Assembly (NCBI GenBank): GCA_025201805.1
Contig: MU619263.1
Location: forward strand, 6,461-70,460
Direction: 5' to 3'
Length of the DNA stretch: 64,000 bases
Source of the DNA: Parasitella parasitica NRRL 2501
Taxonomy: Eukaryota > Fungi > Mucoromycota
Below are positions 1,662 through 36,329 of the stretch, piece by piece (the first letter of the stretch is position 1; each line of letters opens with the position of its first letter). Below the pieces are notes generated by a model. That model did not search any database. It had not been told where the DNA came from and saw only the letters and a list, made by a program, of their open reading frames with translations. Position numbers and translations under genes: made by a program.

Positions 1662-1721
1662 TCACTTTTACATTTTATCAAAAAGTGGTCAACTCAATTA
1701 AGTAAAAGTTGGTCAATTTAT

Positions 1722-1935: not shown

Positions 1936-2088
1936 TTTATTTTCATAAAATTGGTCAAATTAGCTTCGAACATCTGGTCAAATTAGTCTCAAATTTTTGG
2001 GCAATTTAGCCTCACAAAAATGTCCAAAACAATTCAAAAAAGTGGGCGGAGTTTTCAAAAATTCGGTAAATTGGGAGTGGAAGCACAG
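1936..2088 (-). repeat. Right terminal inverted repeat (outer part)
   Basis: Reverse complement of 151-304. Confidence 0.93.
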
Positions 2089-4817: not shown

Positions 4818-4998
4818 TTTATTAAAGATAGATGCTCAAGGAAAAGAAGAAAAGGAAAATACTATATAAAGAATCTTTATTTTATTACAACATCTATCAT
4901 GTTTATTGAGAGTCACTTGGTGTAACAATATTCGGGTCTTGTTGCAGAATGTTTGCATCCAAATCAGTCTGCCCAAATTTGTAAACATTTCATTACAC

Positions 4999-7173: not shown

Positions 7174-7606
7174 GTACAATATGTTTTCAGAAAAAGAGGA
7201 TAATACAAAGAAATTTGTGCTTGATCAACGAGGCAAAAAAACAACAAGGAAAGTAGGGTGAGCTTGTTTCCCGTGAAAAATAGGACTGGGCTTGTCCTGC
7301 AATTTCTTTTACAGCTTTACACAAACTACATAATTCCGTTATCCTGACAATGGACACTACATTTATACTCTTTTTTTTTATGAATGTAACACATGAAAAG
7401 GCTGCTCATCTACTGAAGCTCTTTTTCTACTAAAATCGCCATCATAAAACTGGTCATCAATCATATCCAAACTAAAATGTCTATATCAAATGCAACCACA
7501 TTTAAATAGTTTCTTTCAGTTATTTATAGCTACGACAAGAGAAATCAGACTTTAATAACTACATCAAGACGACTATAGTATAGCACGGTTAGTTTTAGAT
7601 GTTTCT

Positions 7607-11596: not shown

Positions 11597-11880
11597 ATTA
11601 ATGAACGAAAAAAAGGGAAGCGAAGATTTTCGATACATTTTCACTTTAGTCTGCAAGAGAAACAAAGACTAAATGATATCATTGGCCAAAACAGAATCTG
11701 ATACTGTAACACACACACCCCTCAAAGTGTTTGATGGAACTCGGAAGCTACATCAAATAAGCCCGTGACTCAAAAGGGTTCTTATAAACAATAATCAAAT
11801 AAGCTTATAACATGTAAAAAAACGACGCCAGATGCTATATTAGTTTTTCTTTTTCTTTCTTGTATTTCCCTCAATTAAAA

Positions 11881-13560
11881 ATGTCTGAAACTATGGCTCC
11901 AACAAGCGAAAACGTCGAAAATCGACTGGTTTTGATAGATCAGCTCAAAAATTTTCTGGTGTCAGCGCCTGACCATCAATCAGAACCTATCAAAAGACAT
12001 GATTTGCCCTCTGGCGAATGTATTTCTTGCGTAAAATGGCAAGATAAATTCTATATCTCGGGAACCGACATAGTAAGATGTCTAACCTTTCGCTTCCAAG
12101 CCTTCGGAAGACCAGTTGAAAACCAAAAGAAGTTTGAAGAAGGCGTCTTTAGTGATCTGAGGAATCTGAAGCCTGGGACTGATGCTATTCTGGAGGAACC
12201 CAAATCTGCCTTTCTGGATCTGCTGTTCAAGAACAACTGCATTCGCACACAAAAAAAACAAAAAGTATTCCACTGGTATTCTGTTCCTCACGATAGGTTA
12301 TTTTTAGATGCTTTGGAGAGAGATCTGAAACGTGAAAAAATGGGTGTGGAACCAACTTCAAGGGCTGTGGCACATCCCGCTGTTTCCATTAATTTGGATA
12401 CGACTCAAGCCATGTTTGATGAATTTCGCAAAACTGTCTTGTGTGAGCTCAACCTGGACGCCATGTACCATCATCAACACCAGAACCAACAGCAACAGGC
12501 ATCAAGTACTGATAACAGTGTTACATCAGATACTGACTCTCAATACGCCCCCTCTTCCTTGGCTATATCATCACGTGAAGGTGATCTTCAAAAGGCTTCT
12601 TCTACTATATTCGGCCAATTCTCTTTGTTCGAAGGTTCACCTACATACAAACAACGTAGACGTCGTGTAACTCAAAATGAACAAACAACCCTGGAGGACA
12701 CCATCAAAGTAAGAAGACGATCTAATGCTTCATCATCAGCTTCATCATCATCGCCCACTTCGCCTACGTCTTATACTTCTGCAACAAGGAAGCAACTTAG
12801 CAAACAGCTCGTCGTCAAGGAAGAATATGCAAACAATAATGGTGCTGTTGCCTCTAGCACGCGTCACTTTGAATGTCCATTATCATCTTGTGGTAAAATT
12901 TTTAAACGTTTGGAACATATGAAGCGTCATCTGCGAACACATACCATGGAGCGTCCTTACATGTGTGATCTTTGCGGTAAACGCTTTTCTCGATCTGACA
13001 ACTTGGCTCAGCACAAAAAGACTCACAAGCGTAACAAGTCGTTCCAGAATCACCAGCAGCAGCAACTACAACAGCACCGTCGCCATCATAAAAATGATGA
13101 AGCGATGGAAGACGAGGATGATGACGATGAAGAGGATGACGGCGATGACGATAATGATGATGATTACATTGAAAAGCAAACTCTTGTCAAGCCTGAATAT
13201 GTCAGTGGTAGTCATGGTAACATCGGTGGTGGCCGAATCAATGGTTCATTAGCAAGACGTCGCATAAATCATAAAGTTAAAAGTGATACAAAACCTTATT
13301 CACTTTCCATTGCTGTTAACCCATCATTGAGAATAACCACAGCATCCAGGGGTCGTGTAACAGCTCGCTCTCGTAGCTATGATAACCGTAGCAGGGCAAC
13401 AAGATCAAATCATCGTCAATCATCTTACAGGCATGACTCCACATTAGATACTCAAGTCATGTATGAATCTGAAGACTGGTCAAATCAGTTTGAAGATGTT
13501 GAGTGTGTGAAAACTATCTTATCGCCAACGTTAGGTCAACAACAAACACAACAGCAACAG

Positions 13561-13592
<32 letters not shown>

Positions 13593-14292
13593 GCAGCAGC
13601 AACAGCAACAGCAGCAGCAGCAGCAGCAGCAACAACAACAACAACAACAACAACAACAAACACAGCAACTTGTGGTACGGCCTACCTTATCGAACTCAAC
13701 TTCTTCAGCCAACTCTTCTTGCAATTCCTCTCCGATCGTATTTGGAAACAACGTGTATCCGCCTCTCATCAAGCTCGAAGATATTGATTTATTCTACGAT
13801 TTATCCTATCAGCAACGATCATTGCAACAACAACATCAAAATGATGCTAACATGATGTTGGTTGAAGAAGAGTTTCTGCCTTCCATCATGACAGGATCAG
13901 TAGAAGAAGATCAACAAGAAAACGTTATGGCGGCGGAAGATGGCCATTATGTTCAAGATTGGCAACAGAGAATCGACTGGCAGCAATACTCTCTGCCCAC
14001 ATCACCTACTCTCTACAACTACACTGCAGAAGATTTGATTTACGAACAAACTCCAGCAAGCAATGATATGTACTTGCACCCTTCTCACCTCCAAGCAGCT
14101 TATTCATATGCTCAATCAAATCCTTCATCTTGCCTGACCTCACCAGTACCAACATTCCTCATGACGCCTACCACGCATAGTGCCACAACCACTGCAGTTA
14201 ATAGTCCTATTTTGGATGAAGATTACTATCATCCCTATTACTCTGACGAAAGTCCAACCATGACCCCGACTGATTGCTTACTCCAATATTAG
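11881..14292 (+). CDS. STE12: Ste12-like transcription factor with STE domain and two C2H2 zinc fingers
   Basis: STE domain (ISGTDIVR...KKFEEGVFSDLRNLKPG...IRTQKKQKVFHWYSVPHDRLFLDALERDLKRE), motif FSLFEGSPTYKQRRRR, and two C2H2 fingers (CPLSSCGKIFKRLEHMKRH; CDLCGKRFSRSDNLAQH). Confidence 0.96.
13537..13668 (+). repeat. CAG/CAA trinucleotide repeat encoding polyglutamine
   Basis: About 37 uninterrupted Gln codons (13549-13659) inside STE12. Confidence 0.97.
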
Positions 14293-14561: not shown

Positions 14562-16243
14562 CTATTGTTGTTGCCTGGCGTATAATTCTCTAATTCTTGG
14601 TGTAACTCTGTACCCAAATGTTTCCATTTCTTCAAGTAACATATGAAAGCGTGGATCTTGTTCACGAGCAAGCTTCTGTGCCAACACAAAATAGCAATTG
14701 TCGGGCGGAACAATGTCATAACTCTTCATTTCTTCGAGATAAACAAACGCATCTTCGTAATTCTTTTGTGTACAGCAGAGCTCAATCATTTTTGCATAAG
14801 TTTCAAGATTGGGTGTAATTTCGGCCTTCTTCATTTCTTCAATCACTACTTTGCCCATGCCCTTCATACGTGTGTGAATACAGGCTTCAAGGACCAGATT
14901 GTATGTGTCTATATTGGGTACAACGTTTAGGGCACTGGCTTCACGATAGGTAGCCACTGTACGTTCTACGTCCTTTGCATCTGCACATGCTGCCACGACT
15001 ACATTAAAGGCAGAGATGTCGACGGGCTTGTTTTCTTTTCTAAGCTCCTCTAAAATATAGTATGCTTTATCGATCGCCTCGATATTATTGTCTAGGTTTT
15101 TACGAATAGGCAAAGTGGCACGCAATGTAGGAGGAATACCAGATACCCGCATGATGTCGAGAACGTTGAAGGCACTCTTGAGATCTCCCTGGACAATAAA
15201 GGCCTCCATCAGGGGTGTAAAGTAGTGTTCTTTGTAAGGATATCCACTTGTACTCAATTGACGAATAGCATCTGTAGCCAATTTGGTGTTTCCGGTTTTG
15301 GCAGCAACTCGAAGCACGTTAAGCATAGTACCTTCATCAGGACGCATGTCATAGGTGCCGATAGCCTTATCCCAACAATATTGGACAGCTTCTTCATTAT
15401 CGCAATTTGCTCCTGCACGCATAGCATCCAGATAAAGACGAGGTTGAGATTGGACTGGCAAACTAGCATTCTCTGCTTCCTTTAATACACTTAACGCAGT
15501 AGGTGCATCACCAAGACGAAGTGCAGCCTGGATAATGGTACTATAACATAACAAATTGGTTTGGACATTCATCCTTTTCATCTCCTCCAGCGTATCTAAA
15601 GCAAATTCCAGTTCGTCTTGTCTACACATGCCCCTCAGCAGATGCAAGTATGACATTGTTGTCAAGGGCCTACCATTCTCTACCATCTCCTCCTTCAGCA
15701 AAGTTTGCTGTTTGACTTGATTAGCACTAGACAGAGAGTCTAATACAATGTTGTAGTTATCGACAGAGGGTATCAATCCGTTTTCCTTCATTTCATCCAG
15801 AGTACGCATCAGTCCCTGTCGATCTTTGTTGTGAGAATAAGCAGTTAACAGCGCATAATAGGTGGTTTGATCTAAGGGTAGCTTGTTTTGCTTGATCTCG
15901 TCAACAACCTTCAGGACGTTTTCCAAGAATGTCTTTGGTGATCGCTTGTGATGGATGTGGTAGTCGAGACGACCGTGGAAGGCAGCAAGTCGAATAGTAG
16001 GATGACTTTGCTTGATGAGGTTTCTTTTGGTAACGTTGCCGTTGGCCATGACTTGTTCAAGAACTGCTTCTCCGTTAATCTCGGTGGATTGAGAACGCAC
16101 TGTCAAAAATTTTATGTTGGCCGATTGACTCGTTTGGCTTATCCATTGTACTTACATGAATTGATATTTCTGAAAGCCCATTGGTTACCTCGTTGCTTTA
16201 TAGCTTGTGTAGTGTTAACTCTAGAAAGAATAAGTCTATTCAT
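14562..16243 (-). CDS. Pentatricopeptide repeat (PPR) protein, probably mitochondrial
   Basis: Tandem ~35-aa helical repeats (TYYALLTAYS...EMKENGLIPSVDNYNIVL; PNIDTYNLVLEAC; PNLETYAKMI). The first exon MNRLILSRVNTT... is Arg-rich and lacks acidic residues, like a presequence. Confidence 0.9.
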
Positions 16244-16579: not shown

Positions 16580-19500
16580 CTAATGGAAAGGTGATTGAGA
16601 TCTAGTATACTGACCAGGTGTTGGATAGCCAGACATTGGCGGAGGTGTAGAGTAGCCAGGCGTAGGTACAGGATATGAAGGTAAATTATTGTTAAAAGCT
16701 GGTGAAGCTGTTCTTATGGACGGTGTCTGCATCATAAAAGATTGGTTGCTAGCTGTCATGGGATTAAATTGCTGTCCACCACCGCCCCCAGGTTTGCTGA
16801 TGTAGCTTTGATGGCTGTAAAATGTGCCTTGGCTGTAGCCGGACCGCTGAGATCCGTGAGAGCCCACCGATGCATTATCATTGAAATAACCACCGCCATT
16901 CATTTCGTTATCGTACATGCTCTTCTCATATTCGTCCCATGTCACGACAGGTATCGTTTTGCGGTCAAATTTACCCTCATCGGCCATAACAAGCTTTCGA
17001 CCTTTATCGCCCATGACCACACGAGTGTTGCCCCAGGAAAAGTCATCAAAATGCCAGTAAGAATAAATTGGAATCATGAACGAGAAGACAGGAATGGCAA
17101 AGATAGACACAATCATCCAAATAATATGCTCCCATTTTCGATGAAGCAGGAAAATAATCGCTTGAAGACCATAGACACCAGCAATTGTGATGATTGACAT
17201 GAGGGGTACACCAGAGGTGGAAGTAGCCAGCATATAGATAAGGTAAACAAGATAACCTACGATAGCAGGTTGCACCAAGGTACTGAGCAAATCAAGCATA
17301 ACCACAAATCTCATTGAGAAACAGCAGAAGCCGCAGAGCTGAGGCAAGAATACAAGCTCGCCCAAGTTGTGAATAGTGGAGTTGATCCACCGGCGACGCT
17401 GAGAGAGCAAGACACTCCACCGATCGGGAGCAACAGTGGCACATTTAGCATCAGATACAAATTTGGTCTTGTAGTTGGGGAAATGCTTCAGAATCAAGGT
17501 CGTCAGGTAACGATCCTCACCCAAGTGAAGCAGATTTTTCTTGTGCAGTGTGTCAACCTTATTGATAGCATAGTCTTCAATAATTTGGTTCGATATAAGA
17601 AGAGGCTGATTCTTTTGAGGTGCTCGAATGCGATACATGCAGAAACAGCCGGGCAAACAAGTGACAGTGCCAAACAGAGATTCGAATGCCTTGATCATGT
17701 AGTGAGAAATAAAGTACTCGTACACTTGAATCATAGTAACCCAACTATCTTTCTCGTTCGACAGGACAGTTTCGCCACAAAGACCAATAATTTTGGAGTC
17801 ATGGGCAAAGACAGACACCATTCTGTTCAGCCCATCAGCCATCACTTCTGTATCTGCATCCACCATCAATACAAACTCATAGAAGCTGGGATTGACACCA
17901 ATAACATTCTTAATTTGATGGTACAGTTCCAATTCTAAGGGTGTCATTGGAGAGCTAAAATGGACCTTATTCAAGAAGCTCATCAAAATCAACTGGCTAT
18001 CACGCTTTCCACGATTGCCAGGCTTTTGTCTTTCACTTGGTTTGCCCACTTTCGAGACGACAATGTAGGGGACAACATGACCGCGAGACTCATAAAGACC
18101 AGAGTAGACTTTGCCCATGTTGTGTTGCTTTTGACCTTCGCCAACAGAAAAGAAGGAGAGCGGTTCAGGATCAATGTTGGGGTCAACACCTAGGATATCG
18201 AGCACAATACGAGACGTAGGGCGATCATTACCACCACCAATGACCATGCCATCGCAAATAATGAACAGCAGCTTGCGTTTATCGTCATATTGGAGAGCAC
18301 TGATGGAATCAATTGTCTTTTTAAGTTCTTCTTCACCTTCAGTATAGCACGGCACTTGACAAATAATAAACTTTTCGTGCCTCTCAGGCTCGCGACGCGT
18401 ACGGAATTGCAAAGCAGCCAAAAACTTGAATACAATCACTAAACACAAAAACACGGTTACAATCAGCAGCAAGTATTCCGCAAACAGACATCTAGCAGAA
18501 TTGCGCTGATCGACACCACCCGCATAATAGAGATTTCTCAAGCATACCTCCTGACGGTATTTGAGATCTGCATCCAGAGGAAGCGCATTCCAGCTCTCCG
18601 TGATGTCTTGGCCCGCTTTCTGACTAAATAATGTAACAACCGCATTGTCTAAAAAGTTCAGTTCAGAGTTGTCAGGAGCACTAACGCCAGTAGGTAAATT
18701 GAATCGACGGCCACCCAGAATGTAGTAAGTCAAATCATAGACGTTGCCGTTCAATATAGCCCATTGACGAGTAGTCTTGATACCAGACATGTCGACCTGA
18801 TTGGAAGCTTGAGTAGCTATATCCTTGGGCGTGTAGCCCATTGCACCCAGCTTATAGTTCTTGCGAAGATAGGTCATTTGCTGGAAATACCAATCAGGGC
18901 GTGGATCGGCAGTATTCGGTAGGAAGTTATGATACTGGGCATTGCTATCTGTGAGATTAGGATTGAAATCGAGAGAAACATACGGCGACACCGTTCCTGT
19001 AGTTCCTTGACACAAGGCAGATACCTGTACTGGAAACAACGAAGATGCGTCTTTACCGCCGTATTCCAACACAGAATCCTGAGGAATGACCTGGCTGGCC
19101 CAGTGATGAGGAGCAAATTTTGTCAAATCAAATACCTCACCGCGGATTGCGACATACGCGTTATCCTTATCAGAATGACTCTGCAATTCAGATGTCGAGA
19201 AGACGTCTTGATGTGGACAAACCAAAGTACCAAAAAACACCAAAAACCAGATGATGAAGCCAGATGTGAGAAAGATACAAAGACACAAAGTCATCTTTTC
19301 ACGCCATGCAATTTGGATATCAGGACGCTTCAGTTTTCCACACAATGACAAAAAGATGGTTGGAATCCACCAGGTCATGAACCATACAAAATTGAGCCAG
19401 TGGCGACGGGCGCGAGACATCTTTTCGTCCTCTTCGGGCGCCTCTTCTTCTACCACTGCAGTGGTCAAAATCTGCTTCATCTCGGGATTGGCATGTCGAC

Positions 19501-22500
19501 CATAGATATCAGATCCGCCATACTGAGATTCTGTTTCATGGTAGCTGCTAGGCTGTTGGTAGTCATGGTATTCGTCGTCGGAAAGGAATGAGCGTTGATC
19601 ATCAGTATAAATGGATCCTGCGCCACCAGTGCCTCTGGGTACAGGCAAGCCAGCAGCAAGAGCGGCAGCGGCAGCAGCATTGTCTAGTCGACCAGATAGA
19701 TTATAATCAGACTGAGACGCACCACCAGTAGGTAGCAAAAATTCAGTATTTGAGCCAAACGAGGCCTGGGACATGGTCTCTGAGCTTTGGTCTCTTTCTA
19801 TGTTTATTATTGGAGCCCCCAGCGTCGCCATATTTTCCGTCACTCTCTTTTCATCCTTTACTTTTCGTTGATCTGCCTTTTCTATTGTACGTAATCCGTT
19901 TTCCAGTCCTTGCCAGACCGATTCATCTAAGAATATCTACAATGGACATTCAGCATGACGTTGTTATACAGTGCAGTATTTGTTTGCACATACCTTTGTT
20001 TCACCAAGCATGGCTTGTTCGTTTGACCATCTAAAAAGGGCAATAGCTGCCTGACATCGCTGCTTTGCATCATCCGATTCTTCCAAGCCATTAGCATTCA
20101 GGGCTGATGCATATCTCTCCAGAAATTCATCGTGGAATAGGAAATTGGTATACTGCGTCTTGAGACGCTGGCAAATTTGTGGAATGCCCCAGGCTCTCAC
20201 CTGTGAGCGAACTCGATTGCTGTCAAACTGATTTGGCGCTGCATTATCATTTGGCTTTATGCAGAATATAAACCACGGTACTGTTTCATCGAGTGTGGCA
20301 AACAATTCGTCCATTGATGTTTGCAGTTGCGAAAGCACCATAGAGACGTTATTCTTCTTTGCTGGCTTTGATGCAGGCTCTTCTGCTATGGGATCCCCCA
20401 AGGCGTTGCGGCTTCGTTTTGTGGATTTTGAACGACGCATAGAGGGGCCACGGAGTGGGCCGCTGGGTTGTTGCGCATTCAAAATGGCAGTGGTTTGTTT
20501 AGGGTGGTTTTCAGTATGGATCGAGTTATTAGCGAATAGTTCCAGGGCAAAGCTGTTGTATGAGGCTGGAGACGTTTCACTTCCACGGATCAGCTGTACT
20601 AAATCAGCGTTGAATATATCCTTGTTGGATTCGAGGAAATCGGAAGGGTTGTAGGCAACTTGTCCTGCAAAATGCTGGATGGTGAATAATCGCGACCCCG
20701 TATCCGCTTGCTTTGTTCCAAACGACGCATGATTGCTGTTGTATTTAACAAACGAGTCCACCAGAGACGCGCTAGTAGACGAAGTTGATTTGGAGTAGTT
20801 GTTTACAATATCTACCAGGCAGTGTTTTGAGCGAGTCAATAATTCAACGCAGGGCAAGTTGTTGAAATAAGGCACTTCTTGTACTGGTAACCCCTCCGTA
20901 CAATATTCCTCTACATCTAATTCAAAAATAGAGCGCTGACAAAAATGCTGAAGACGCTCATTGGCAATGTTGATACAAAACGAGTTAAAGCTGGCGGATG
21001 TCTGCTGTAATCTAGGTCCAGGTAGATCCAAAATGCCAATGAAATTGTGCACAGAATCGCAGCACAGTTTTGTATTCATATACTCCACTAGCCATGTAAA
21101 CAGCAGAGAGTACAACGATGTGACAATGTCGTCTCTTTGTTTAGCAGCACCAGCAGAATCCAAAATCAATGTCGTAATGTCCTTTTTAATCAACTGCGTC
21201 TTGTACGTGAAGATGTTCTCCAAAGCTCGAGGATCAACACCAAGAAAGTCAGCACACAGGTCCAAAGTAGCAGCATTCTTGACAAACGCAGCTTCTTGCA
21301 CAAATGAGTCATGGACGAATTCGAGCTGGCCCATATGAAGAAGACAAGCTACAAATTGCCAAATTCTGGTTTGGTATATCTTGTTGATACCGAGCACTTT
21401 CATAGCTTGTTTCACGTTTTGGAATTGATTAGCTTCGCCACCAGCAGCAGCCATATTCCGGGGTGTATATCTGTATGGTGAATCATCGTCTAATTGTAGT
21501 AAATAAATTTGCTTTTCTTCGGTTGATATGCCACCTAGTAGCTGATAGAATATATGAAAGTTTCGTTCATGAACAGGACATTCAGTTACTCGAGACTTGT
21601 CTAATAGGTAGTTGAGGAGCTTGGCGCCGACCATGCGGCCCCGCTCGTTAAATTGCAATTCCAAATACTTGCCAAAACGAGAGGCGTTGTTGTTTAAGCC
21701 TGTACGAGCGTTACCGAATGCTTCTAAAACAATATTAACGCTGGTGATTTGTGCCTGAAGTTTTGTTTCTTTCTTTTGAGATGATAACTGTATAAGATGA
21801 CTTAATACCGATTTGAATGATTCGGTTTTTCCGCTTCCTGATTCACCACTAAAGTATGTAGGAAATAAGGTCAGTTTCCCGTTCTAATAACCATGATTTG
21901 TCCCCCGATCCTCATTGCTTCCCCTTGAACTTGAGAAAAAAAAAAATCGAGTTATGGCTCCATTATTGATTGTCTCATGATTGTCCAGAGTATTGAAACA
22001 GATGATCATATGAAACATCAAAGTAAAGAGACATGATATATATATCAATGTCATTTATATGACATTGATAACATTTCGATATTTGGTACAATAATATAAA
22101 TTAATATACATAAAAGCCAAATAGAAATGTAATAAAAGCCCCTTCACATTTTCAACTCATTTTACCCCTCCCACCCAGATACAGTAAAAATCAAGAGATA
22201 AAAAGCAACAGCTTATTCTCGCACACACACACACACACGCACACCCACCCATCAACCAAGCACATTCTACGTTTCCCTTTCCATTCCAATATATAATTAC
22301 CTTAGTATTAATGACTGATCGATGCCAGTGCGTCTCATGTGTAAGTAAGCTTGATTTGTCAATTTGTTGATATGTGCTGGCAAAGGTTCTAGAGCATCTG
22401 AGCCCGTATCTCTGTATTCTGCTACGTACTGTAAATTTTGTTGCGGCATTGGCTTGTATGGATTAACGACCACTATAGCGGAATCACTGATGCGAGAATA

Positions 22501-22602
22501 AATCACATTGGAGGTGAAGCCAGCCTTCAAACACTGAGTTAAACTATCTTCTGTCATTTTATCTTGGTCGGATAGATCGAATCTACTGAGCCTTGTTGCC
22601 AT
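16580..22602 (-). CDS. Class V chitin synthase with N-terminal myosin motor-like domain (myosin XVII) and cytochrome b5-like domains
   Basis: Myosin motifs VVVNPYK, GESGSGKT, NNNASRFGKY, ERNFHIFYQL, FTIQHFAGQV, FCIKPND. CHS motifs AWREK, NRGKRDS, VDADT, QVYEY, TCLPGCFCMYR, LGEDRYL, QRRRWINST and FSWGNTR are all intact. Confidence 0.96.
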
Positions 22603-22938
22603 CGTAACGAAATTGATTTTATATTTTATATTTCGGTTGCCAGATCAAAAAAAAAAAAAAAAAAAATTAAAAAAAAAAAAAAAAAAAAAAAATTAAAATT
22701 AAAAAGATAGAGAGAGAAAGAAAGAAAGAGAGAAGGAGAGAAAGGGAGAGAGAATTCAAAACTGTGGACAACAAAATATTTTTTTTTACAAAAGAAACAG
22801 CTTCCCCGTTCCCGTTTAAATGACTATTTTTATCCATACCTTGTGTGATCTTGTACAATTAATTGAATATGGTGTGGTGGCAGGAAAAAGAAATGATTTA
22901 TTTATAGGGGTAATGAAGCAAACAAATGATTGGAGTGC

Positions 22939-23969
22939 TTAGAATCTAACTTTTCTCTTCCGTCCCGTGAATTTCGAATCATTGGCAACCACTTTATCGC
23001 CTTTATTGCGAGCAACTTCCTTTTTCTTGTTGATCCATGCTTTACCTTTCACTGCATCACGGCCTCCTTTTCTCTTTTTCGATGCTTGTCTACGTTTTTC
23101 ATACTGGATCGATCTGGCTTCATCGGGATGTACTTCTCCATCTTCACCTAGTGCTTTAGGCATTTGATTTTTGACACCCGATTGTACACCTGCAAACAGA
23201 CACAAATAATACTTTTTGGCCTTTTTGGAATTGGGATAATCGACCAAGAGGCCACCTTCAAAACCACATTTGGTAGCCACGTCGGTAATTAACTGGATTT
23301 GATCGTCATTCTCGGGATAAAATTGGAATACAGCTCTTGCTCCTTTATCTAACGATGCATATAATGTTGTGAAAAATCGCTGAAGTCTAGCTTTTGGCCG
23401 ATTAATAGTTTTGTCTGCATTACAGAGCCATTGGAGGACAGAGACACTATCGAAAAATGTCAGACGCCACTTTTTAGAAAAAGAAAAAATATGTACATAA
23501 GTAAACGCATTACCTAATGCAGCCATCAAATGTACCTGGCCTGAACGCGACACCCTGTCCCGCATCTTGTAAAAATAAATCACCCTCTACCTCTCTCTCA
23601 TTAGCTATATCCAACATGGATGGTGAAATATCCATGCCCACCCAGATATGGCCTTCTTCTTCTAAAATCTCTCCACTGAGGCCAGAACCACATCCAATGT
23701 CCAGTAAAAATTTAGGCCCCTCTGATAGATTCAACAATTCAAGCGCACGATATGCCATTTCTGCTTGGATTGCAGTAATACGGGAGCTATGGTGAATTTG
23801 TTTAATTCTCGGCTCAGAAGTGTCGATTGATTCCCTTACTTGTCAGTGTATTTTCTAGCTTCGTCATCTCCATAAAACTGCAGTCAAATGCATGTTAATT
23901 AACAATTTATCTCGTTTTGACTTTAAAACTTACAATCTCTGGCGGTGCAATGTGTTCTGGACGAGACAT
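22939..23969 (-). CDS. BUD23: 18S rRNA (guanine-N7)-methyltransferase Bud23/WBSCR22
   Basis: [11 protein letters not shown] start, [34 protein letters not shown], and C-terminal [13 protein letters not shown]. Confidence 0.96.
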
Positions 23970-24233
23970 TTCCAGTGTGTTTTTGTCAAAAAGAAAGACC
24001 CTTCCCTTGATGAAAAAAAAAAGAGACAAGAAATGGTTCTTGTGACTCTGGTCCTGCAATCAAACATCAAAAAGCTTGAAGCAAAAGAGTGGCTTTGATT
24101 TGAAATCAGCAACCCCTCAATGTTATTACCTTGCTTGTCGACTAGGGTCCGATACACTTTCAATTTAAACCTGCCTAGCTATTTTGTTTCTTTCCGCTCC
24201 CCCTTTTTTTTTTCACTTGTACATCCAACTGAT

Positions 24234-24712
24234 ATGCTTCATTTACTTGGTGTCAATTTACCTGAAAGAAAATTAGTGAGGTATGCATGTACGCATTTGT
24301 CCAACATGATTCAATGCTAAAACTATCCTACAGCACCGCACTCCAATATTTCTATGGTATTGGTGAGCCCACAGCCACTAAATTATGTCAAAAACTATCT
24401 ATTCCTCCTACATTGAAAGTGCTCGAATTAACCGAAGTTCAAGTTAATGAATTAACAAACACATTGGCCAACATGACTATCGAAACTGACTTGAAGAGAC
24501 AAGTCAGGGAACATGTAATGCACCATCGTAATATCAACAATTTCATCGGCAGAAGACACGCCATGAGTCTGCCTGTACGTGGACAAAGAACTAGAAATAA
24601 TGCTAAAAACGCAAAGAAGCTGAATGGTAGATGGGTTCAACGTAGAGGAATGTCAATGTGGACACAATTACAACAAGGCCCTTTGAACAACTTTTTAGAA
24701 AAGTACATGTAA
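24234..24712 (+). CDS. SWS2: Mitochondrial ribosomal protein uS13m
   Basis: MLHLLGVNLPERKLV, then an intron, then ALQYFYGIG and GRRHAMSLPVRGQRTRNNA (S13 signature). Confidence 0.93.
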
Positions 24713-25393
24713 ATTATATAAATATTATAAAAATAAAAAAAGAGAGGATCCAGCAATCAGTACTAAATAGACAGACAACGCTGTTTATCAAGTAGAAACC
24801 CTTATGCTCATAAAAGACAACAATACTACAGTCATTTTTAAGGACACATACCGTATGGAAGTATCGTTACGAATCAAATTTTACTTGTTATGCTAGATTA
24901 CGTTTGAATAGACCAGGAGGATTGATTTTTCGCCAATTGCTAGTTGATGCGATGTCATTATGGTCCACGTGTAATTTGATTTTATATGCTACTACACTAT
25001 CAGTTCTCTGAACTGCTTGTACAAGATACCATGGATATAATATATGTGTCTTCATGAATAAAAACTAAATGTCAAACACATGAAACTTGGACTTTTTCTT
25101 CTTCTGCAATACTAATGGTATTTACATGCCTGATATAATTTTGAGGTCTTTTCATACGAAGCTGAATCTTGTTCTATCAACAGCAAAGATATCCGTATAC
25201 CGTATAAATGGGCATGCACAAGTTGTATTGAAGACGTCTGCGTTTTCTGGTATCAGCATCATATTACAACAACTAGGGGGAGGGTTTTTTTTTTTTTTTT
25301 TTTTTACACATGATGCTAATAGTTCTAAATTTTATTTCAAAAGGACAATATTTTATATACAATGGTTTTCTTCCATATGGTTTTGTTGTACAG

Positions 25394-27359
25394 TTAAACG
25401 CCATCTTGACCCTGCTCCTTTTTGCCCCTCTTGGCCTTCTTGTCTTTTTGTGCTGCGTTTCTTTTCCGCTTCTTGGATGCCTCAATTATTTCCCTAGTTG
25501 GCATATTAGTACAACGACAAAGACAATGTCTGTCAATGGTAGCAGCTCTTACTTTTTCTTGTTCTGGTTGTATTTATCGTACTTGGAGGTAGTATCAACG
25601 TGATCACGGTCCAAGCCCTTGCGCATCTTTTGCTTTTGGTTGCTGGTCATTTTTTTGATATTCAACATCCACTCAGGAATTTCGCAGCCTGAATCCTTCA
25701 TCACATTCACAACGCCCCGCATGTATTGCAAATCGTCTTGTGTGTAGTATGTCACAGCTTCACCTTGGCGACCAGCACGGCCCGTACGGCCAATTCTATG
25801 GATATAACTTGCTACAGTCTGAGGGAAATCATAGTTGATGACCAAATTTACACCTTTGAAATCTAAACCACGCGCCATCAATTCGGTAGCAATCAACACC
25901 CAGATCTTGCCCACGCGGAATTGATCAATGATGTTGTCACGCTGCGCCTTTGATCTGTCAGAATGGATCACCTCTACATTGATGCCATCGAAAATCAGCT
26001 CGTGAAAGAGCTCTTTGGCACGCTCAATGGATTGGACAAAAATGAGTACAGGTGGTTTGATACCCTTTTGCACCAATTGGCGCAATGCAATCATCTTTCC
26101 AGCCTCTGTGCCAGTGAACAGTAATTCCTGCTTGATTGTGTCTGTGGCAGCATTTCTATCACAAAACCCGTGAGCAAACATGGTCGCAAACACAGCCCAT
26201 ATCGTCTGGGATACTTACTTGGTACCAATGACAATACGAATAGGGTTTTTCATAACCGTGTTGGCAAGCTCTTCGACATGCGAAGAAAAGGTGGCACTGA
26301 ATAGAGACTTTTGGATAGTAGCTGAGGAACACGCGGCAAAAATCTCGTCAGTCTGGTCCAGGAAGCCCTGGTCCAACAACTTGTCTGCTTCGTCAAGCAC
26401 AAGATGCTTCACTGCAGTCAAGTCGACTTCTTTTTCCTTGATAGCATATACGAGTCGCAGGGGCGTAGTGATCAAAATATCTACCGAGTTCTCAATACCT
26501 ACGTCCATCATGCTTTTGAAACCAACTTACCAAACTTTTGTCTTGATTCAGGAGTCTGCGATTTATCAGCTGCAGTTGCCTTGGTCAGCACATTGATACG
26601 GAGCTTAGTGCCTTGGCTCAGATGATCGGCTTCGCGGGCAATCTGCTGCACCAACTCTCTTGTAGGTGCAATGATCAACGCGCGGTAGCTGGTCTTTTTC
26701 TCGGGTTTTTTCAAATCTTGCAAAATGGGCAGTAAAAAGGCCATGGTTTTACCTGAACCGGTTGGGGCGCAAGACATGACATCTCTGCCGTGCAACATAA
26801 TGGGAATCGACTGCATTTGCACAGGTGTAGGCGTAGTGTATTTGATGGCCATCAAGTTTTTGTAAAGGACATGATCAAGATTATAAGCGGGCGACGCAAG
26901 ATCTTCAAACGTTCTAAAAGGATTCGGCACATCAGTACCGTACACCTTGATTTTATACTGTTTTTTAAACTCTTTTGCCTCCTCAGCTGTGTCGAAAACA
27001 GTGGAGGCTTGCTTCTTGTTGGCTAAGAGAAGAAGTGGGTGGGTATTTCAGCATAATTTTCAGAGAAAAAAACCAGCTCATGTACTACCTTTTTTCGACA
27101 ATTTGTGTAATTTTCCTTCTTGAACTGATGTCTTGTTGTCGTCTTTGTTCTGGTTCGAGCCGACAATGGTATGTGTGGTTTTGAAAAAGTCAATTTCATC
27201 GAGCAATTGGGAGCGAACTTGAGAATCGATGACAGCTGCATTCTTCTTTTTGGACTGTGTCTGATTGGCTTCTTTTTCACCTTCAAAAAGATGAACGTCG
27301 TTTTTGAATCTAGCCTTATCAAAGCGAGCACCGCCTCCTAGTAAATGAAAAAGATCCAT
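25394..27359 (-). CDS. ROK1: DEAD-box RNA helicase Rok1/DDX52
   Basis: [15 protein letters not shown] start, [59 protein letters not shown]. Confidence 0.95.
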
Positions 27360-27634
27360 GTCGTTTGGAGTGTGCAGGAGAAAAAAACTAGGTTTATGAA
27401 ATTCCTGGAGAAAAAAAAAAAAAAAAAAAAAAGCTGTTCTTTTTCAACATTGCTACAAGCCACATTGTAATGGCTAATGGAGCATACCCGGTACTGTAAT
27501 AGAAAAAGAAAGAGCGTCATACTAGTAGACAGCACCAGCTCCAGCACCAGCTCCATAGGTAGTGATTGCCATGCAAACCAAGTGTAAAAAAAAAAAATTT
27601 ACTAAATCAATCAAGACAGATGCAGCTTCTTTAT

Positions 27635-30600
27635 TTATCTCATATCGACCGAGTTTAGTAGTTCATTAGTTACATTTTCTACACACTGATTAACAAAGTC
27701 CATCAATTGGGTATCCGATTCATCAATCCATTGGACTCCAAAATGTTGGATCAAGTGCGATTTTACCTGGACTCTTGTCGTTGATTCCAGGCTCACTCTC
27801 TGCAGATAAGATCTGACTTCTGAACTAATGGCTGTGCGTATATCGACTTCGCCTGTAATCAAGGTGGATTTGGAAGCCTGGTTTTTGAGAAAGGATGGAC
27901 TTGTTGAGTCACTCATGTTCCTGAAATGCCGTGATAGTGAGCCCGACGAGGGAATGTGCAAAATAGACCCGCTGCCACTGGTAGCAGCAGCAACTTTTTT
28001 CAATCGTTTTGATTTCAATAGCGTCGTAGTGTTAGCAGGTGGGCTAGCATTTCGTAAAGCTGCATGGTTATCGTATTGCTGGCGAAGGTTCGCATAGGAG
28101 GCGGTTTGTTGTTGGGGTTGTTGTAGTGAGAAATTATGTACGGCTCGGCTTCGTCCTTCTTCTGGCCCTTCTTTACTGTACGCCGTGGACAATCCCTGAT
28201 CGTCGTCTGTGTCCAAGTTTTCATTATTATATAAAGCAATTCGATGGCGAGGAAGACGATCGTTGCTTCCCACAGGCATGCCAAAGTGCTCCTGCTGGAA
28301 TGGTATTTCAGCATTGTAAGCATTGTAAGCATTGTAAATAGAGAACGTGTTTGACGAGATGGACAAGATGGATGCGCGGTCCTGCTGCTCATCGTCATTG
28401 CTATTATCAGCGTTGCTGGCTCGAGGAGAATGGTCGTCAACAATCAAAATAGGGTTTTCGGGGCGTATTGTGCTCATCAAAATTTCATCCGCGTGTTGCT
28501 GACTGTCTAAATAGGTGGGTATCTTTGCAAATCCACTGCTGTTTATGCTGCTGGGCAGAGTGGAGCCATCGGTCATGTCGTATTGCACACCTAATTTTGT
28601 CGAGTAATTTATATTCCCATTGCTTGCATCGTTTTGTTGGCTGGTATATGTAAAGTAGGAGGATTGTGAGTGGCTGGGACGATGCTGGTTGAAGCGATCT
28701 CTTGCGGGAGTTACTTCGTCAGAGTGCTCTCCGGGAAGAGCTGGGTATACACCATGTTCGTCATCAAACGGGTTGTCGATATCAGCAAACGGGTTCTGCG
28801 CTGGGGGATCAGGTACATCTTCAGATTTGCTGTTGGGATACCTGTGTCTCCAAGTGGACATTTCCAAGCCGGTGGGTGGGCCATTATTAGCTGTGATGCG
28901 AGTAGAATGAACCACATCCCTCAATTGGGCCAAGGGAGGAGTTGCGATTTCGTTTACCTTTGCGCCGTTTCCATGCAAATGGTCGTCTCCTTCTAGCCCA
29001 TCCGCAAATCCAGTAAACCCGATAAAGTTAGAGTCCAAAGCCGCCTCTGCTGCTTGATGCAGCCGGGTTGCTTCCACCACTTCATGTTCACCTAGTCTTA
29101 GCCTGGGAACAGAAAACAACTCAGGATCGCCTTTATGGTGCTCTCTGCTCTCATCAGGGCTCTCATAATGGTCATCATAAAGCGCACTCTGAGGAGCCTT
29201 TTCTGAAGACTTGATTTTGCCGTTGTAGATGTACAGAGGTTCAGTCTGTCTTTGACGATCAATGATGCCATGTAGCCGAGCACCGCGCCGGGCTGTTGTA
29301 GGCCACACATCGTACCAATATGCGGCATAGTCACTTTGCCAGACTGCTAGAATAGGGAACCAGATAGCATACAGAGGCAACGACAGCAAACAGTACAGCA
29401 CAAACCATAAGATGTAGCGAAACTGACGTCGCAGCAAAAAGAACAGGATATGGAGCGCAACGAGGCCTGTAAAAGAACAGGCGATTATCACATACGCCAT
29501 GCCAGACTGACGAACCGAGCGACCAAATATACCGTATAGATACACAATAATGGGCATGGAAAAGATCATGTCTAGAAGCTCTGTTGTCGAAAGAATCCAG
29601 TAGGTTAGGCCCAGCTGCCACGATACACGCTGCATCTCGAGTTGTGTGTGGAACGCAGAGCGGATGTTGCGGATCTGGAGCCCTTGCAAAGAAAAGAAGT
29701 TGGTTGGTAATGTCGCATAGCCCACAGCTTCTGGCTCAAACCCCAAACGATGATTAGGGTGCGATTTCAGCAGCACTATGGGCATGATCTTCTCTTCTCC
29801 CAAAAGTAAGACATTCTGCATGTGCATCGTATCTGCGTACGGCGTGGAGATGCCTCGCAACACTGTTGGGTGAACACAGCACGGCCGAACGTCCACTCGA
29901 GCAGACAGTGAAAGACGTGATTCAGGCCGGACAGCCATTGAAAGTCTGTTTGGGCGTCCAATAGAGATGGATCTAGTGTGTGCTCTATGGCTTGCTGTCG
30001 CTGTAGTTGTGGCTGTCGTCATTGTAGTGGTGCTTTCATTCGTAAGAGAACTTTGGCGGGAAGGGGGGTCTTGGAAAGGATCGGTGATGATGATCTCGTC
30101 GCTCAGCTTTGGCCATTTGTTGTACAGCTGCTGTCGACGGTGATGATTTCCAAGCGATTGCTGAGAGGTGTTATTGCTCTGATGTTGGTGCTTTTGTGGT
30201 AGCTTCCATTTTCTAAGGAACTTTTGGCTCTGTTCTTGCTGCTGCAAGAAGGGTACGTTCTCTGTCCATATTTTGTACATGACAAGGCCACCGTTGATTG
30301 TCATGACGCTGCGAAGACACGCTTCGTATGCTAGGCCCGAGAAGAATGTCATGTAGGCTGGAAAGATCTGCAGCATGGTTGTCAGATTTTCCTCGGGATT
30401 AGCAGGACGCACATGGCCGCTCACTGCAAGCATCTTGCGGTCCTGCTCAAGACGGGACACCAGTTTCTGCACAATATCACTCTGCACCTGTATGTCCGCA
30501 TCCGTAACCAACATGTACTTGAAGCACCTTGGGTCGATACCCAGAACATTGTAGCACTGATTGAAAATTTCATAGTCTAACGGTGTGATTCTGTTGTTGG

Positions 30601-32399
30601 CTAAATTCATGCATCGCTCAAGAAAGCCAAAAACAAGCACCAACGAATCTCTTTTGCCACGGTTTCCAGGAGGCGCTGTGAGCATATGGCTTTGGCGGTA
30701 TTCGGTTTCTTCCTGAGTCTGGCCAATTTTTACAATGACAAGATAGGGAACTCGGTTGCGACCTGTTTCATAGTAGCCAGAGTAGACGCGGGCGTAGTTT
30801 ATGCGTTTTCCATGTTGTCCTAATGAAGTGTAGGCTTGAGACAAGGGCTCGTCAGTGCAGCTGTAGCCGAGATATTCGAGCAACAAAACGTATGTTTCCT
30901 TTTGCTCTTGTGTGCTTGTAGTCACGCCATCGCAGACAAACAGCAGGAGCTTTTTATTGTCATCATACGTAGAACGAGACAAGGTGTCCAGTGTTTGCTT
31001 GAGCGTTTCAGATGACTCAGAAAAGCATGGCACCATGAGGATAGTGTGAGGCCATTGCACATGCTGCGCTGCTGAAGACCGCTGTTGATAAAGAAACGAT
31101 GCTGACGAGAATTCAGGCGCAAAGTTGAACAAGAATCTGTGTATGAACGACACCCTCGATAGATAGGCCAGGTTCATTTTTACGAGAAAGTAGAGCAAGC
31201 CAACCCCCATCGTTGCCCACAGCGCAGGGTTGATGCGACTGCAATCAGACGATATGTACGAGGGCACAACGCCCTTCTGGAATAAGTGGATCAGACAGTT
31301 GCGATATAGTGTGGGGTTTTCAGTGACATTGCCGTCAAAGCCATCAGTAATATCTTTGCCGAGGTTGATGTACAGAAACAGCGTTAGATCGAGCGGCAGA
31401 AACATGCGATCGAGGGCAAAAGATCGAGAGCTGAGGGTTGATGACAGAGGAATGATGGTGGTTGCTCCGCTGAGGTATGTTGTCACATCGAGAACATAGC
31501 CATCTAGTATAACGTAGGCTTGTTTTGTTGAGTTGTCGGGCGACGGTAGCGCATTGTATGTTCTTCGTATTACGTCTGGATCGTATTCGATGTCTGCAGC
31601 CTACGAGTCAATATCCATGTTTCTATATGCGTACATGTATTAATTACCTCCTTTAACGGGCAAGGCACTTATTTGAGCTTCATAGTCTGCCCCGTAAAAG
31701 CATGGGCCGCCGGTGACATTGAGATGGTCTGGCAATGGACACTGGCTCAAATGATCCAGCTCTGTCCTGCTATAGCTGTAGCCTGGGTCATGTTGAAGAA
31801 TATAGTCCAGCCAGGCGTCGGCTTTGTCGGCATTGCTTTGATAATAGACGCAGTCATTGAGAATGCTGTCTCGGTACTGATCTTGGTCAGATGAACGACT
31901 CAACTTTATAAATTTAGGGAAATTGGCAGATAAATCATGATGTGGATACTGGTTCACCCAGTCGATCATCGGGCTGGCGATGCCTGTGTGTCTCCAGTCT
32001 ACAGCTTTACCATTGATAGCTGCCATCTTTGAATCGTTTGAAAAGACTTCGTGGTATGCCAAGGGCTTTTCTGGGTCGCAAAAGTAGCTCGAGATGTATT
32101 CTAACCAGAAACAAAAGAACGCTGCTGAAAACAAGAAGAGGAAAAAGAGTGCTATCTTTTCACGCCAAGCCTGGCGAGATTCTAAGTAGGTGTGTGTACA
32201 TGTATATGATGTTTCTGTGTGAGTTGAAATCATAAACCGTACATACATAGATGCAAAATAACAAACCACTGCTAGTTAATCCTCCTACATAGTACAGTAG
32301 AAAATCAGGTATAAGAAACGTTAAAAACCGAGAAAATGAAATCCAAACAAGCCGTCTGCAAGTAGGACGACGTAAATATGTGTATTTTTCTACACTCAT
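27635..32399 (-). CDS. Chitin synthase-like protein (division 2, class V/VII-derived, no myosin domain) with degenerate catalytic motifs and a C-terminal DEK-C-like domain
   Basis: QAWREKIAL, cytochrome b5-like segments, YDDNKKLLLFVCDG, VYSGYYE, VPYLVIVKIG, PGNRGKRDS and TDAD are retained. GEEK replaces GEDR and LQIRNI replaces QRRRW. The last exon is an unbroken frame of more than 1,280 codons. Confidence 0.88.
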
Positions 32400-33967
32400 G
32401 TACTATATGAAGCCTGCTCCACCATAGAATATTGAAAAAGGGGAATTTTTAAAAAAAATAAAAAAAAAAAAAAGAGAAAAGAAAGGATCAGCTTGATTGT
32501 ATCTAATCAAGAAGAAAAGAGGGGTGGAAAAAAAAAGGGGGGGGGAGGGATGGAGCAGTAGTACGATATATCCATGATTGGCTGTATTGAGACTCATCGA
32601 GTTTTCTGGCTACCTGGCTACCTGGCAAGTTCATCTTGTATCACCCAAGCAGTGATATTAACTGAATACAATTACACAACTCGCGAAACACTTGAAGCCT
32701 TTTTCTAAAGAGGGCGAGGTTGTGTAAAAATGTGCTATCTCTTGAGGTAGAAAAGGTATGCTACTGATTGACGAGTGCAATACATATATACGGAAGACAT
32801 TCAATACCACACCTCAGATCTAAACTTTTTAAAGTATACATGTTCACATAGATCTATTATTCTCTAATACGCCCATGTGGATTGAGTAGCTTTATGTTTT
32901 GCTGATGGTTCAAGATAAAGTTTATAGGCTATACTATTGGCACCATTTTACCTTCGAATCGTCTCAACTTTTTATGGCAGAAGGTTGCTCGTTTGGATTC
33001 AACATTTACATCTACATAGATAAATTAAAAGTGAATGAGATGACCGGTGTGCTTTGTTGCGAGATTACAGAAGCTTTGCTGTTGATCAATGACGATACAT
33101 ATTAGTAGTTGTTTGACAATTTGCTCAAACAAATAGCCACATCAATCTCTGAATCTGTTTGATAAACCATTTTTTGATACATCACTAAAGCGCGGAAATC
33201 TCAGTCAATTTGCGATATGAAACTTTTACATCACTAGTATGCAATGTGCTTTTAACGCTCAAATCCTCGTAATAAAGATCACATCAGACTAATTAAATGT
33301 GCATTGCGCATAATGTTGTATCATGTCCCATACACACACGAAAGGGCTTTGTTGGTTTCCAAAAGAACATTCATACATATTATATCACTCGTTTTGGAAA
33401 TGCAAAAATGACCATCAGTGGGAACCCATCTTTTTCTCCAATCACGAGAATTTGGATGTGTATATGAATATTCAATTTGTATAAAAATATCTTTTGCATA
33501 CTTTTCTGTATTACAAAACGGAAATGAATGTAAAACAGTACTTTGTTTTCGCTCAACAGCCAGCAAAACATAGCCTTTGACTCATTTAAAATAATATATG
33601 ACACATGAATGAAGAAAGACTAAATTGCTGTTTATTTGCAAGATATATTTATAGTTTGAGTTTCCTTGTATATTCTAAATACCTTGCAATAGATGGTGGT
33701 ACACAATAATCATAATGAAATTTAAATGCATAATATTATACATATATTTTTTTGGTGATATTCGAGAATGTTTAATTCAGCATTCCCAAGTGTAAAATGA
33801 AAGAACAATGTTTCTATAACGGCAAGTTGGATTGATACATAGATGAGCTCACATTTTGATCGTTCCGTATATATACAAAATAAGAAAGTTGCAGTAATTG
33901 TAGCGCGCAGTTTTGTTCAAATTTTTATTTATTTTTTTCATTCCGTAGTTTTTGAGATTTTGAGTTT

Positions 33968-34147
33968 NNNNNNNNNNNNNNNNNNNNNNNNNNNNNNNNN
34001 NNNNNNNNNNNNNNNNNNNNNNNNNNNNNNNNNNNNNNNNNNNNNNNNNNNNNNNNNNNNNNNNNNNNNNNNNNNNNNNNNNNNNNNNNNNNNNNNNNNN
34101 NNNNNNNNNNNNNNNNNNNNNNNNNNNNNNNNNNNNNNNNNNNNNNN
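33968..34147. other. Assembly gap (180 N)
   Basis: Run of N. Confidence 1.
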
Positions 34148-34210
34148 AGAAAAAAAAGAGGAGAAAAATGTAAAATTATAATATTGCATATGGAGATTTA
34201 GAAGTAGAGG

Positions 34211-35381
34211 TTATTGCCAAAATCTACAATGCTTTTTATCTAATAAAGCAATGTGTTCTTTGCCCTCATATTTACGTTTTTGAGATGTGTTCATACGAGC
34301 AGGAGGAGTCTGAGCTGGTGAGGATGAGATGGAACTTGGAAGAGAAAGAGATAAAGCAGGGGGTGCAGATATAGGTGAACATTGTGGACATCCACAAGTG
34401 GTGGAAGAGCAAATTGAGGTGGTAGGTGATGACAAAGGAGGAGTTGAGATGTATGAAGATGGCAATTCGCTGTTATTATTGTATATGTGGTTAATTGATG
34501 TTGATGGGTATGATGCTATGGGTGCAAATGATAGGCAAGAAGATAGATCACGCAGGGATGTTGGGATATTATGCATCCTGGCCTGTGTGCGGGTGTGTAA
34601 AAGACGGTGCCAACAATCAAATGTGGTCTGATCAATGTACAGTCTATGGTCCATGATACTCAAAAAGTAGCGCTCTGCAGTATTGATCTCTGCCACGGGT
34701 AATCCTGCTATTTTTGCCCATGCTGAATTACGATATGTTTTATCTTGCACAAATTTGGATGCCACAACAAGACTAGCTAAAAACATGCGCCTACCACAGC
34801 TGATGTATGCGTTGTGCTGCCAGTTGTTCTTTTTATCACATGATCTTTGTTGTTGTTGTTGTTGTTGTTGTAAGTGTTGAATAATAGCTGGTCGAGCACG
34901 AAACAAATAGAACAATGCTGTTTGTAACGTGGAGTAAGTAGTTCGAGATCTCTTCAACACCTCTTGAATGAAAGTCCGCAAGGGTACAACCGGCGATACT
35001 CGGGATTCCTTGGAGAGGGTAGGGTACCAAATGGATTCAATGACAACTGCATTGATATCTAATCATGTAGCGAATTTAATTAGATATTCAAGTGCTAATA
35101 ATAAATGTACATATATGAGGCTTACCAACTAAGGCTTCTACATAAGCCAATCGATTGGTGGACACAAGTTGGCCAGATTGAGTCGATTGGATTGGTTGCT
35201 GTTGTACTGTAGTGGCAGAAGAAGCAGAAATAGGAGCAACATACTGTTTTTTATATTTTTTGTTTCGTAAGGCATAAAGGTCAGGATCCGTCTGAAGAGA
35301 ATTGACCGAAAAAACATTTGAGGTTGTCATGGTAATAAATTTGGTATCCAAGGTGTGGTGATCAGCAAATGTGTGGTTCAT
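34211..35381 (-). CDS. Pho85-type cyclin (Pcl5/Clg1-like), two exons
   Basis: Cyclin box LRTFIQEVLKRSRTTYSTLQTALFYL...CGRRMFLASLVVASKFVQDKTYRNSAWAKIAGL...ERYFL. The start codon is uncertain. Confidence 0.9.
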
Positions 35382-36329
35382 TAGTATGTCTGAAGTTTGT
35401 TCTCTCCTTTTCTGTTTCTTGATGAAGGTAAATTTATAAAAAAAAAATTCAACAAAGATTGAGAAAAGAAAAGAGAGGGAGAGAGAGAGAAAAGAAATAA
35501 AAAAGAAATGGAATGGAAATAAAAGAGAAAATAGAAAAATAGAAAGAAAGTAAGAAGGAGTGCGGGGGTACAGGTAGTGAAGAAAAGAAGAGAGGAGGGC
35601 GGGGGCTCGAAAAGAGGGGGGCAACAACTAAAATAAGAAGGGAATGAGGCAAGGTGTGTGTTTTTCTTGTGTGTCTCTAATATATGCAGTTGCGTGTGTA
35701 ATGAACAAATTCACATTTCTAATCAGCAAGTCAGTCAATCAAGTCAGACCACAAACTGAGCCTAATTGATTGTGTATGGTGTTAATGGTGTGAGTACATT
35801 CATCTAAGCCCAAGAATTCAGTTTACGAAATTAGCTCTCCTTTAGAAAGATTGGCGACAGCAACTCCACTCTATTAAGGAGATCCCTTCCGTATATCTTT
35901 TTCTTTCTTCTCTCTGCGGGATCCCGTTTATTGGTATCTTCTGCGTGTTAATTATTTCGTTATGTTAGATTTTTAGAGTGTGGCAATAATTTAGTTTCAA
36001 GTTACACTTGGATAAACTCACCTCCAGCAACAAGAAAACCAATCATTTCACGTGTCCGCGATGGGTGTAAAATGGATGCAGTACATTATCAATTTTTGCA
36101 AATTGACATGAGGAATTGTTGTAAGGAGCGAAAATACTACTTTATGACTGATGATTACACGTTGGCCAAGTAAATAAACAAACAAATAAATAAAAACGAC
36201 ACTTGTAGTTGTTGTCAGATTCTCCTTACAAAACCTGTTGTACTAATGATATCTCCTTGATGTTGGCTATGGTGACATGTTCAATGTATAAATTTTTATT
36301 TGTTTCAAATGGGCTATGTATAAAAACGT

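Follow-up and report, generated by a model that had tools for sequence, protein, structure and literature searches.

Parasitella parasitica NRRL 2501, a fungus of the Mucorales (family Mucoraceae), carries a gene for a chitin synthase-like protein. Very probably selection maintains this protein, its donor pocket is intact and it is no canonical chitin synthase. The gene lies at 27635..32399 on the minus strand of the window, by which we mean the whole stretch of 64,000 nucleotides analysed here (assembly GCA_025201805.1, contig MU619263.1, positions 6,461 to 70,460). To judge from its sequence, every donor contact known from solved chitin synthases is kept and every residue of the slit that holds the acceptor N-acetylglucosamine (GlcNAc) is replaced; the replaced motifs appear as new conserved motifs rather than as decay. 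Our preferred reading, held tentatively, is that of a neofunctionalised enzyme in which the donor would still be turned over and the sugar passed to an acceptor other than the end of a chitin chain. An earlier note on this DNA, made from the letters and open reading frames alone, had described the gene as an intact but catalytically dead chitin synthase homologue and had offered two roles for it, as a non-catalytic binder of uridine diphosphate (UDP)-GlcNAc or as a glycosyltransferase (GT) with changed chemistry. These two alternatives frame the question correctly.

Donor and acceptor motifs and the predicted fold

The motifs were compared by BLASTP of the candidate with the class V myosin-motor chitin synthase encoded in the same window (16580-21664, minus strand), an intact gene whose product contains Myosin_head, Cyt-b5 and Chitin_synth_2 domains, the last at 5e-239. 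The region common to the two proteins is 29% identical. The donor (UDP-sugar) half of the candidate spans 30491..31030 (minus strand, as for all features of this gene given below) and retains the motifs M1 PCFSESSE (31007-31030), M2 VCDGV (30923-30937), VYSGYYE (30767-30787), M3 PGNRGKRDS (30644-30670) and M4 TDADI (30491-30505). The comparison thus reproduced what the earlier note had seen by eye, the conservation of CDG, VYSG.YE, PGNRGKRDS and DAD. Across the family of homologues described below, the pocket motifs of M1-M4 (PC..E, CDG, GNRGKRDS and DAD) are invariant or nearly so. According to work on chitin synthases, M1-M4 form the pocket for the UDP-sugar; within EDR, the Glu touches the donor sugar and the Asp serves as general base, and the diphosphate is contacted by the third Arg of QRRRW (PMC12653383).

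The acceptor half has been rewritten at five places. M5 reads QIFPAY for QVYEY (30353..30370; family motif QIFPxY), with loss of the acceptor-site Glu and Tyr, and M6 reads TINGGL for TCLPGC (30284..30301; family motif T[IL]NGG[FL]VMY), with loss of the gate-lock Pro. In M7, LGEEKI for LGEDRY (29786..29803), the Glu that contacts the donor sugar is kept, the base Asp has become Glu and the Arg has become Lys. M8, LQIRN for QRRRW (29666..29680), keeps the diphosphate-binding Arg and loses the acceptor-stacking Trp, and M9, YWYDVW for FSWGNT (29303..29320; family motif WYDVWPT), keeps the Trp (W724) and loses the Gly. The channel-entrance motifs QXXEY (M5) and (V/C)LPG (M6) are therefore absent from the candidate, and EDR, QXXRW and the SWG/WGT(R/K) gating loop are absent in their canonical form. 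All five motif pairs listed in the earlier note were reproduced, but its statement that the acceptor and catalysis motifs are all rewritten goes too far: the third Arg of QRRRW and the Trp at the SWG position are kept, and the Asp-to-Glu change still leaves an acid.

In yeast Chs1, the acceptor GlcNAc is held in a slit between W760 of QXXRW and P675 of VLPGA, and the site is completed by Y654 and E653 of QXXEY and by R718 of EDR (PMC10409773). All of these residues are replaced in the family: the Trp by Asn, the Pro by Gly and the Arg by Gln or Lys, while the Tyr and Glu are lost. The Trp of QRRRW is found in 0 of 113 family members; the third Arg of that motif and the Glu of EDR are each present in 113 of 113, and W724 is invariant among the 63 aligned members. 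At the catalytic-base position 82 members have Glu and 31 have Asp, and none has a non-acidic residue; the position that follows, the Arg of EDR, is variable (Q/K/R/L/H). Of the GEEK and LQIRN substitutions, whose conservation the earlier note had proposed to test, LQxRN is family-wide and EEK varies.

The replacement of all five acceptor-slit residues and of the gating-loop Gly is what favours a non-catalytic pseudoenzyme, a protein that would bind UDP-GlcNAc without transferring the sugar and whose role would be that of a sensor or scaffold, or of a regulatory partner that joins active chitin synthases or deacetylases, for instance within a heteromer. We consider this a serious possibility, if not the one we favour. 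It gains from the presence of Glu at the base position in 73% of members, with several switches between Asp and Glu, and from searches against structures, in which the candidate matches no solved chitin synthase at E<=1e-3 and the active paralogue does so at 2e-17, through the motif region that is altered in the candidate; phmmer with the single candidate protein gave no match among PDB sequences. It is opposed by the base position itself, which stays acidic throughout the family while the neighbouring residue varies freely.

The candidate matches the Pfam profile Chitin_synth_2 (PF03142) at 2.7e-80 with 270.9 bits (cut-off 27), in two stretches; profile positions 19-289 and 295-486 were matched in a six-frame search of the same genome. 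An AlphaFold model of main-frame residues 40-760, built on 63 homologues, has a predicted local distance difference test score (pLDDT) that exceeds 90 throughout the GT domain, is about 90 for an interface helix and three long transmembrane (TM) helices (29339..29698) and falls below 50 in an insert described below. The model superposes on known synthases, namely hyaluronan synthase (HAS), BcsA and Chs1, with Z 21-24. Because the superposition covers both the GT and the TM parts, the architecture of a membrane-embedded synthase is retained. The preserved fold and TM helices, together with the Chitin_synth_2 domain, the intact donor pocket and the acidic base, would also fit a protein that is still a chitin synthase and works with non-canonical motifs. 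We regard this as improbable, since the Trp/Pro sandwich that receives the acceptor GlcNAc in ScChs1 is now Asn/Gly and QXXRW is treated as essential for the enzyme class.

Family spread and selection

Homologues were collected in two word-seeded searches, the first from the GT region and the second from a Jimgerdemannia member, a procedure by which distant members could be missed. The GT-region search returned more than 110 homologues at 475-1457 bits, and canonical class V enzymes came next, with a drop to 225 bits. A matching gap (393 to 263 bits) appeared in the Jimgerdemannia-seeded search, which added Endogone, and the best-scoring canonical proteins in both searches were mostly of class V/VII. 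All named family members belong to the Mucorales or the Endogonales (Bifiguratus among the latter), about 50 species in all, and several genomes hold two or more. Every member carries the family-specific replacement motifs QIFPxY, T[IL]NGG[FL]VMY, LGE[ED], LQxRN[IL]R and WYDVWPT. A second intact copy lies in the same genome (contig C167, 35319-37121), with an uninterrupted frame and the family motifs QIFPLY, TTINGGFVMY and WYDVWPT.

FastTree placed the family in a single clade with a Shimodaira-Hasegawa-like support of 100, in which the Endogonales are basal and old A and B paralogues are found within the Mucorales. A long branch (0.58 + 0.58) separates the family from the class V/VII group; the tree was built without class IV or division 1 sequences. 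The family has been conserved since the split between Mucorales and Endogonales.

The proportions of nonsynonymous (pN) and synonymous (pS) differences were obtained against two orthologues, one from a second Parasitella assembly (L032) and one from Mucor ambiguus (L031). Over the whole gene, pN was 0.11-0.12 and pS 0.62-0.68, giving a pN/pS of about 0.17, a rough value since synonymous divergence (dS) is saturated; in the core formed by the GT and TM parts, pN was 0.01-0.06 and pS 0.55-0.78, with a ratio below 0.1. Between regions pN differed: it was lowest in the TM helices (0.012-0.042) and the rewritten acceptor half (0.015-0.030), higher in the donor half (0.05-0.06) and the insert (0.11-0.12), and highest in the C-terminal tail (about 0.2). 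The gene is under strong purifying selection, and the rewritten half and the TM helices are its most constrained parts. The earlier note had inferred that the protein is kept by selection and had proposed to test whether the ratio of nonsynonymous to synonymous rates (dN/dS) lies below 1; in every region pN is indeed much smaller than pS.

A young or decaying pseudogene, with a frame left open by chance, was the other outcome that the earlier note had considered, and it deserves practically no credence. Nothing favours it beyond the lost motifs, and it is refuted by the intact frame and clean introns, by the second intact paralogue, by the presence of the same substitutions in Mucorales and Endogonales within a clade of full support, and by the low pN/pS both overall and in the core.

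The distribution of constraint also bears on the choice between a binder and an enzyme. A pure binder of UDP-GlcNAc would not need replaced motifs that are invariant, nor an acceptor half more constrained than the donor half. We lean slightly towards a changed acceptor because the base is always acidic, the new acceptor-site motifs are invariant and constraint is strongest there; on the same three observations, the description of the protein as catalytically dead is not supported as it stands. In the neofunctionalised enzyme that we propose, a UDP-sugar, which is almost certainly UDP-GlcNAc together with a divalent metal, would be bound and activated as donor by a machinery composed of M1-M4, the Glu of EDR, the third Arg of QRRRW, the gating-loop Trp and the acidic base residue. 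The channel mouth that clamps the acceptor GlcNAc would have been remade from new conserved motifs, with the addition of a disordered loop that is regulated. Because that mouth is rebuilt, extension of chitin by the canonical mechanism would be impossible; the sugar would go to another glycan, to a lipid or to water, or a different product would be made. Donor binding, catalysis and the change of acceptor are what we infer here from the anatomy, conservation and selection reported above.

Several points weigh against a changed acceptor. The base position has switched repeatedly between Asp and Glu, which strict catalytic geometry would not tolerate, and both the SWG Gly and the EDR Arg have been lost; in yeast Chs1, the G970A mutant is reported to fail to complement (PMC10409773). 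The high conservation of the interface helices could reflect packing or the binding of a partner and not a new acceptor site. Finally, with dS above 1, the dN/dS ratios are rough, although their direction is clear.

Gene structure, insert, tail and surroundings

The gene runs from an ATG at 32399 to a stop codon at 27635, and its translated product is identical to a database protein of P. parasitica (P0001, 'chitin synthase-domain-containing protein', 1541 aa), to which the joined exons were matched in placing the intron borders; the searches themselves were run with single exons or with P0001. Exon 1 (32267..32399) encodes an N-terminus of 44 aa without a myosin motor domain and is followed by intron 1 (32182..32266; 85 nt, GTTTGT...TTAG). 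Exon 2 (31648..32181) encodes the first TM segment and a Cys/Trp-rich N-terminal region whose resemblance to the cyt-b5-like part of the class V enzyme is only weak; a Cyt-b5 domain gave no Pfam match in the candidate protein. Intron 2 (31594..31647; 54 nt, GTAATT...TGCAG) precedes exon 3 (27635..31593), which holds the GT domain, the TM helices, the long C-terminal tail and the stop codon. The main open reading frame (ORF; 27635-31486) has 1283 aa, the frame is open over 1321 codons, and both introns are of the GT..AG type, in keeping with the intact gene, TM helices and clean introns that had been reported from the letters. The myosin motor (PF00063) is absent from the candidate and from all listed family members, and only 44 aa precede the first TM segment.

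The insert in the GT domain is a disordered S/Q/T-rich stretch of about 124 aa (29888..30259) between M6 and M7, close to the low-complexity insert of about 130 aa described in the earlier note. M6 and M7 are 157 aa apart in the candidate and 36 aa apart in eight canonical enzymes, and this spacing is lengthened in every family member, to 49-207 aa. Inside the insert lies a short linear motif, KWPK[VL]SDEI (30092..30118), that is conserved in the family: of 63 aligned homologues, 57-58 retain each of its core residues K, S, D and E. That such a loop, disordered, 50-200 aa long and bearing a conserved motif, lies beside the active site is a further point in favour of the pseudoenzyme.

The long low-complexity cytoplasmic tail (27887..29281) evolves faster than the core and is yet constrained. 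It contains two NPF motifs, NPFADIDNPF (28766..28795), and 86 of 97 tails in the family have one NPF or more, as against 4% of shuffled tails. NPF is a known ligand of the EH domains of endocytic proteins, and the motifs suggest regulated trafficking, in which the protein would be carried as plasma-membrane cargo. Near the C-terminus there is a weak DEK_C-like domain (27719..27832; 17.3 bits, below the cut-off of 24.8); PF08766 (DEK_C) is listed for at least 14 homologues.

The class V gene lies about 6 kb downstream of the candidate on the same strand, with a helicase, an S13 gene and a methyltransferase between them. The order cyclin, candidate, DEAD helicase, S13, methyltransferase, myosin-chitin synthase is kept in the second Parasitella assembly, and no myosin-chitin synthase was found within 10 kb of the orthologue in Mucor ambiguus. 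We considered the two genes as a linked complementary pair and rejected the idea; the linkage is treated as incidental, being not kept in Mucor ambiguus, and this also tells against the candidate as a regulatory partner without activity of its own. The class V gene has as further neighbours a Ste12-like transcription factor with a STE domain and C2H2 fingers (11860-14292, plus strand) and a PPR-repeat protein (14562-16106, minus strand). Positions 18993-36000 of the window are collinear with the other P. parasitica assembly (GCA_000938895.1, L032) at a DNA identity of 68-85%; pS between the two assemblies is about 0.6 in the candidate gene, and they look like distinct species-level lineages that share one name.

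Expression of the family has circumstantial support, from contigs of homologues that look like transcripts. One Logan contig (L033, SRR14532548) encodes, within 869-7266, a homologue of the candidate of 1506 aa and the neighbouring DEAD helicase of 578 aa, both as uninterrupted ORFs 140 nt apart; the Parasitella orthologues contain introns, and the contig may therefore be derived from transcripts. Two others, independent of each other (L034 and L035, one from Logan and one from JGI, of 5117 and 5087 nt), each just span a family member of 1578-1586 aa, the ORF being flanked by about 120 nt on its upstream and about 235 nt on its downstream side, a geometry like that of an mRNA. These transcript-like contigs have no poly(A), no sample metadata and no genomic counterpart on record, and blastn gave no match between L034 and L035.

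Known relatives and biological meaning

A class VIII of chitin synthases was proposed for Mucoromycotina by Mélida et al. 2015 (Environ Microbiol 17:1649). Its members lack QXXRW/QRRRW and were excluded by Gonçalves et al. 2016 (PMC5122149), and a later review places the class in division 2 and makes it exclusive to Mucoromycota (PMC7389182). The family described here very probably equals class VIII, an assignment made on the published description: both are of the division-2 type, confined to Mucoromycota and without QXXRW, with no known difference. The gene thus very probably belongs to a class already on record; the selection test and the dissection into donor and acceptor halves are what we add to the literature found. 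Our literature search found no functional work on class VIII, and Ma et al. 2009 and a 2024 nuclear magnetic resonance paper do not treat the class separately. Gonçalves et al. held the class dubious for want of essential motifs (PMC5122149), a judgement that favours the pseudoenzyme.

The best-scoring canonical relatives are the class V/VII myosin-motor chitin synthases of the CsmA/CsmB type, which share with the candidate the donor motifs and, beyond the GT domain, the same succession of TM helices; the C-terminus of the candidate is DEK_C-like at a score below the cut-off. Unlike them, the candidate has neither a myosin motor nor a Cyt-b5 domain detectable with Pfam, its motifs M5, M6, M8 and M9 are rebuilt, and it has an insert of about 120 aa and a long NPF-bearing tail. 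The top structural matches are hyaluronan synthases (Chlorella virus HAS and Xenopus HAS1), with Z 22-24 over about 400 residues of the GT and TM parts, and HAS1 is the only PDB match of the family profile (7e-6). The HAS enzymes, of about 420-590 aa, keep QXXRW and a WGTR gating loop, whereas the candidate has neither. We rejected an identity as hyaluronan synthase on the absence of these defining motifs and on the equally good match of the canonical paralogue to HAS1 (1.5e-5); because the paralogue matches HAS1 similarly, the resemblance extends to division 2 in general and does not single out the family.

A bolder proposal, to which we give little weight, is that class VIII proteins are the missing synthase, or the exporter, of a wall polymer other than chitin that is specific to Mucoromycotina, and would use the UDP-sugar pocket and the TM channel with a wider, more polar acceptor site. 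The product may be a polyuronide that contains glucuronic acid, the synthesis of which is uncharacterised (bioRxiv 10.64898/2026.02.21.705424).

An intact donor site joined to a fully replaced acceptor site makes the family a natural experiment on functional change in the processive synthases of GT family 2. The Mucorales include agents of mucormycosis, and their chitin/chitosan wall is a drug target. As about 50 species carry members, and this genome is among the several with two or more, the large numbers of 'chitin synthase' genes quoted for Mucorales are higher than those of true chitin synthases. The family could plausibly regulate wall synthesis or make a wall component that is still unassigned, and nucleoside-peptide inhibitors may bind it as well, given its conserved UDP-GlcNAc pocket.

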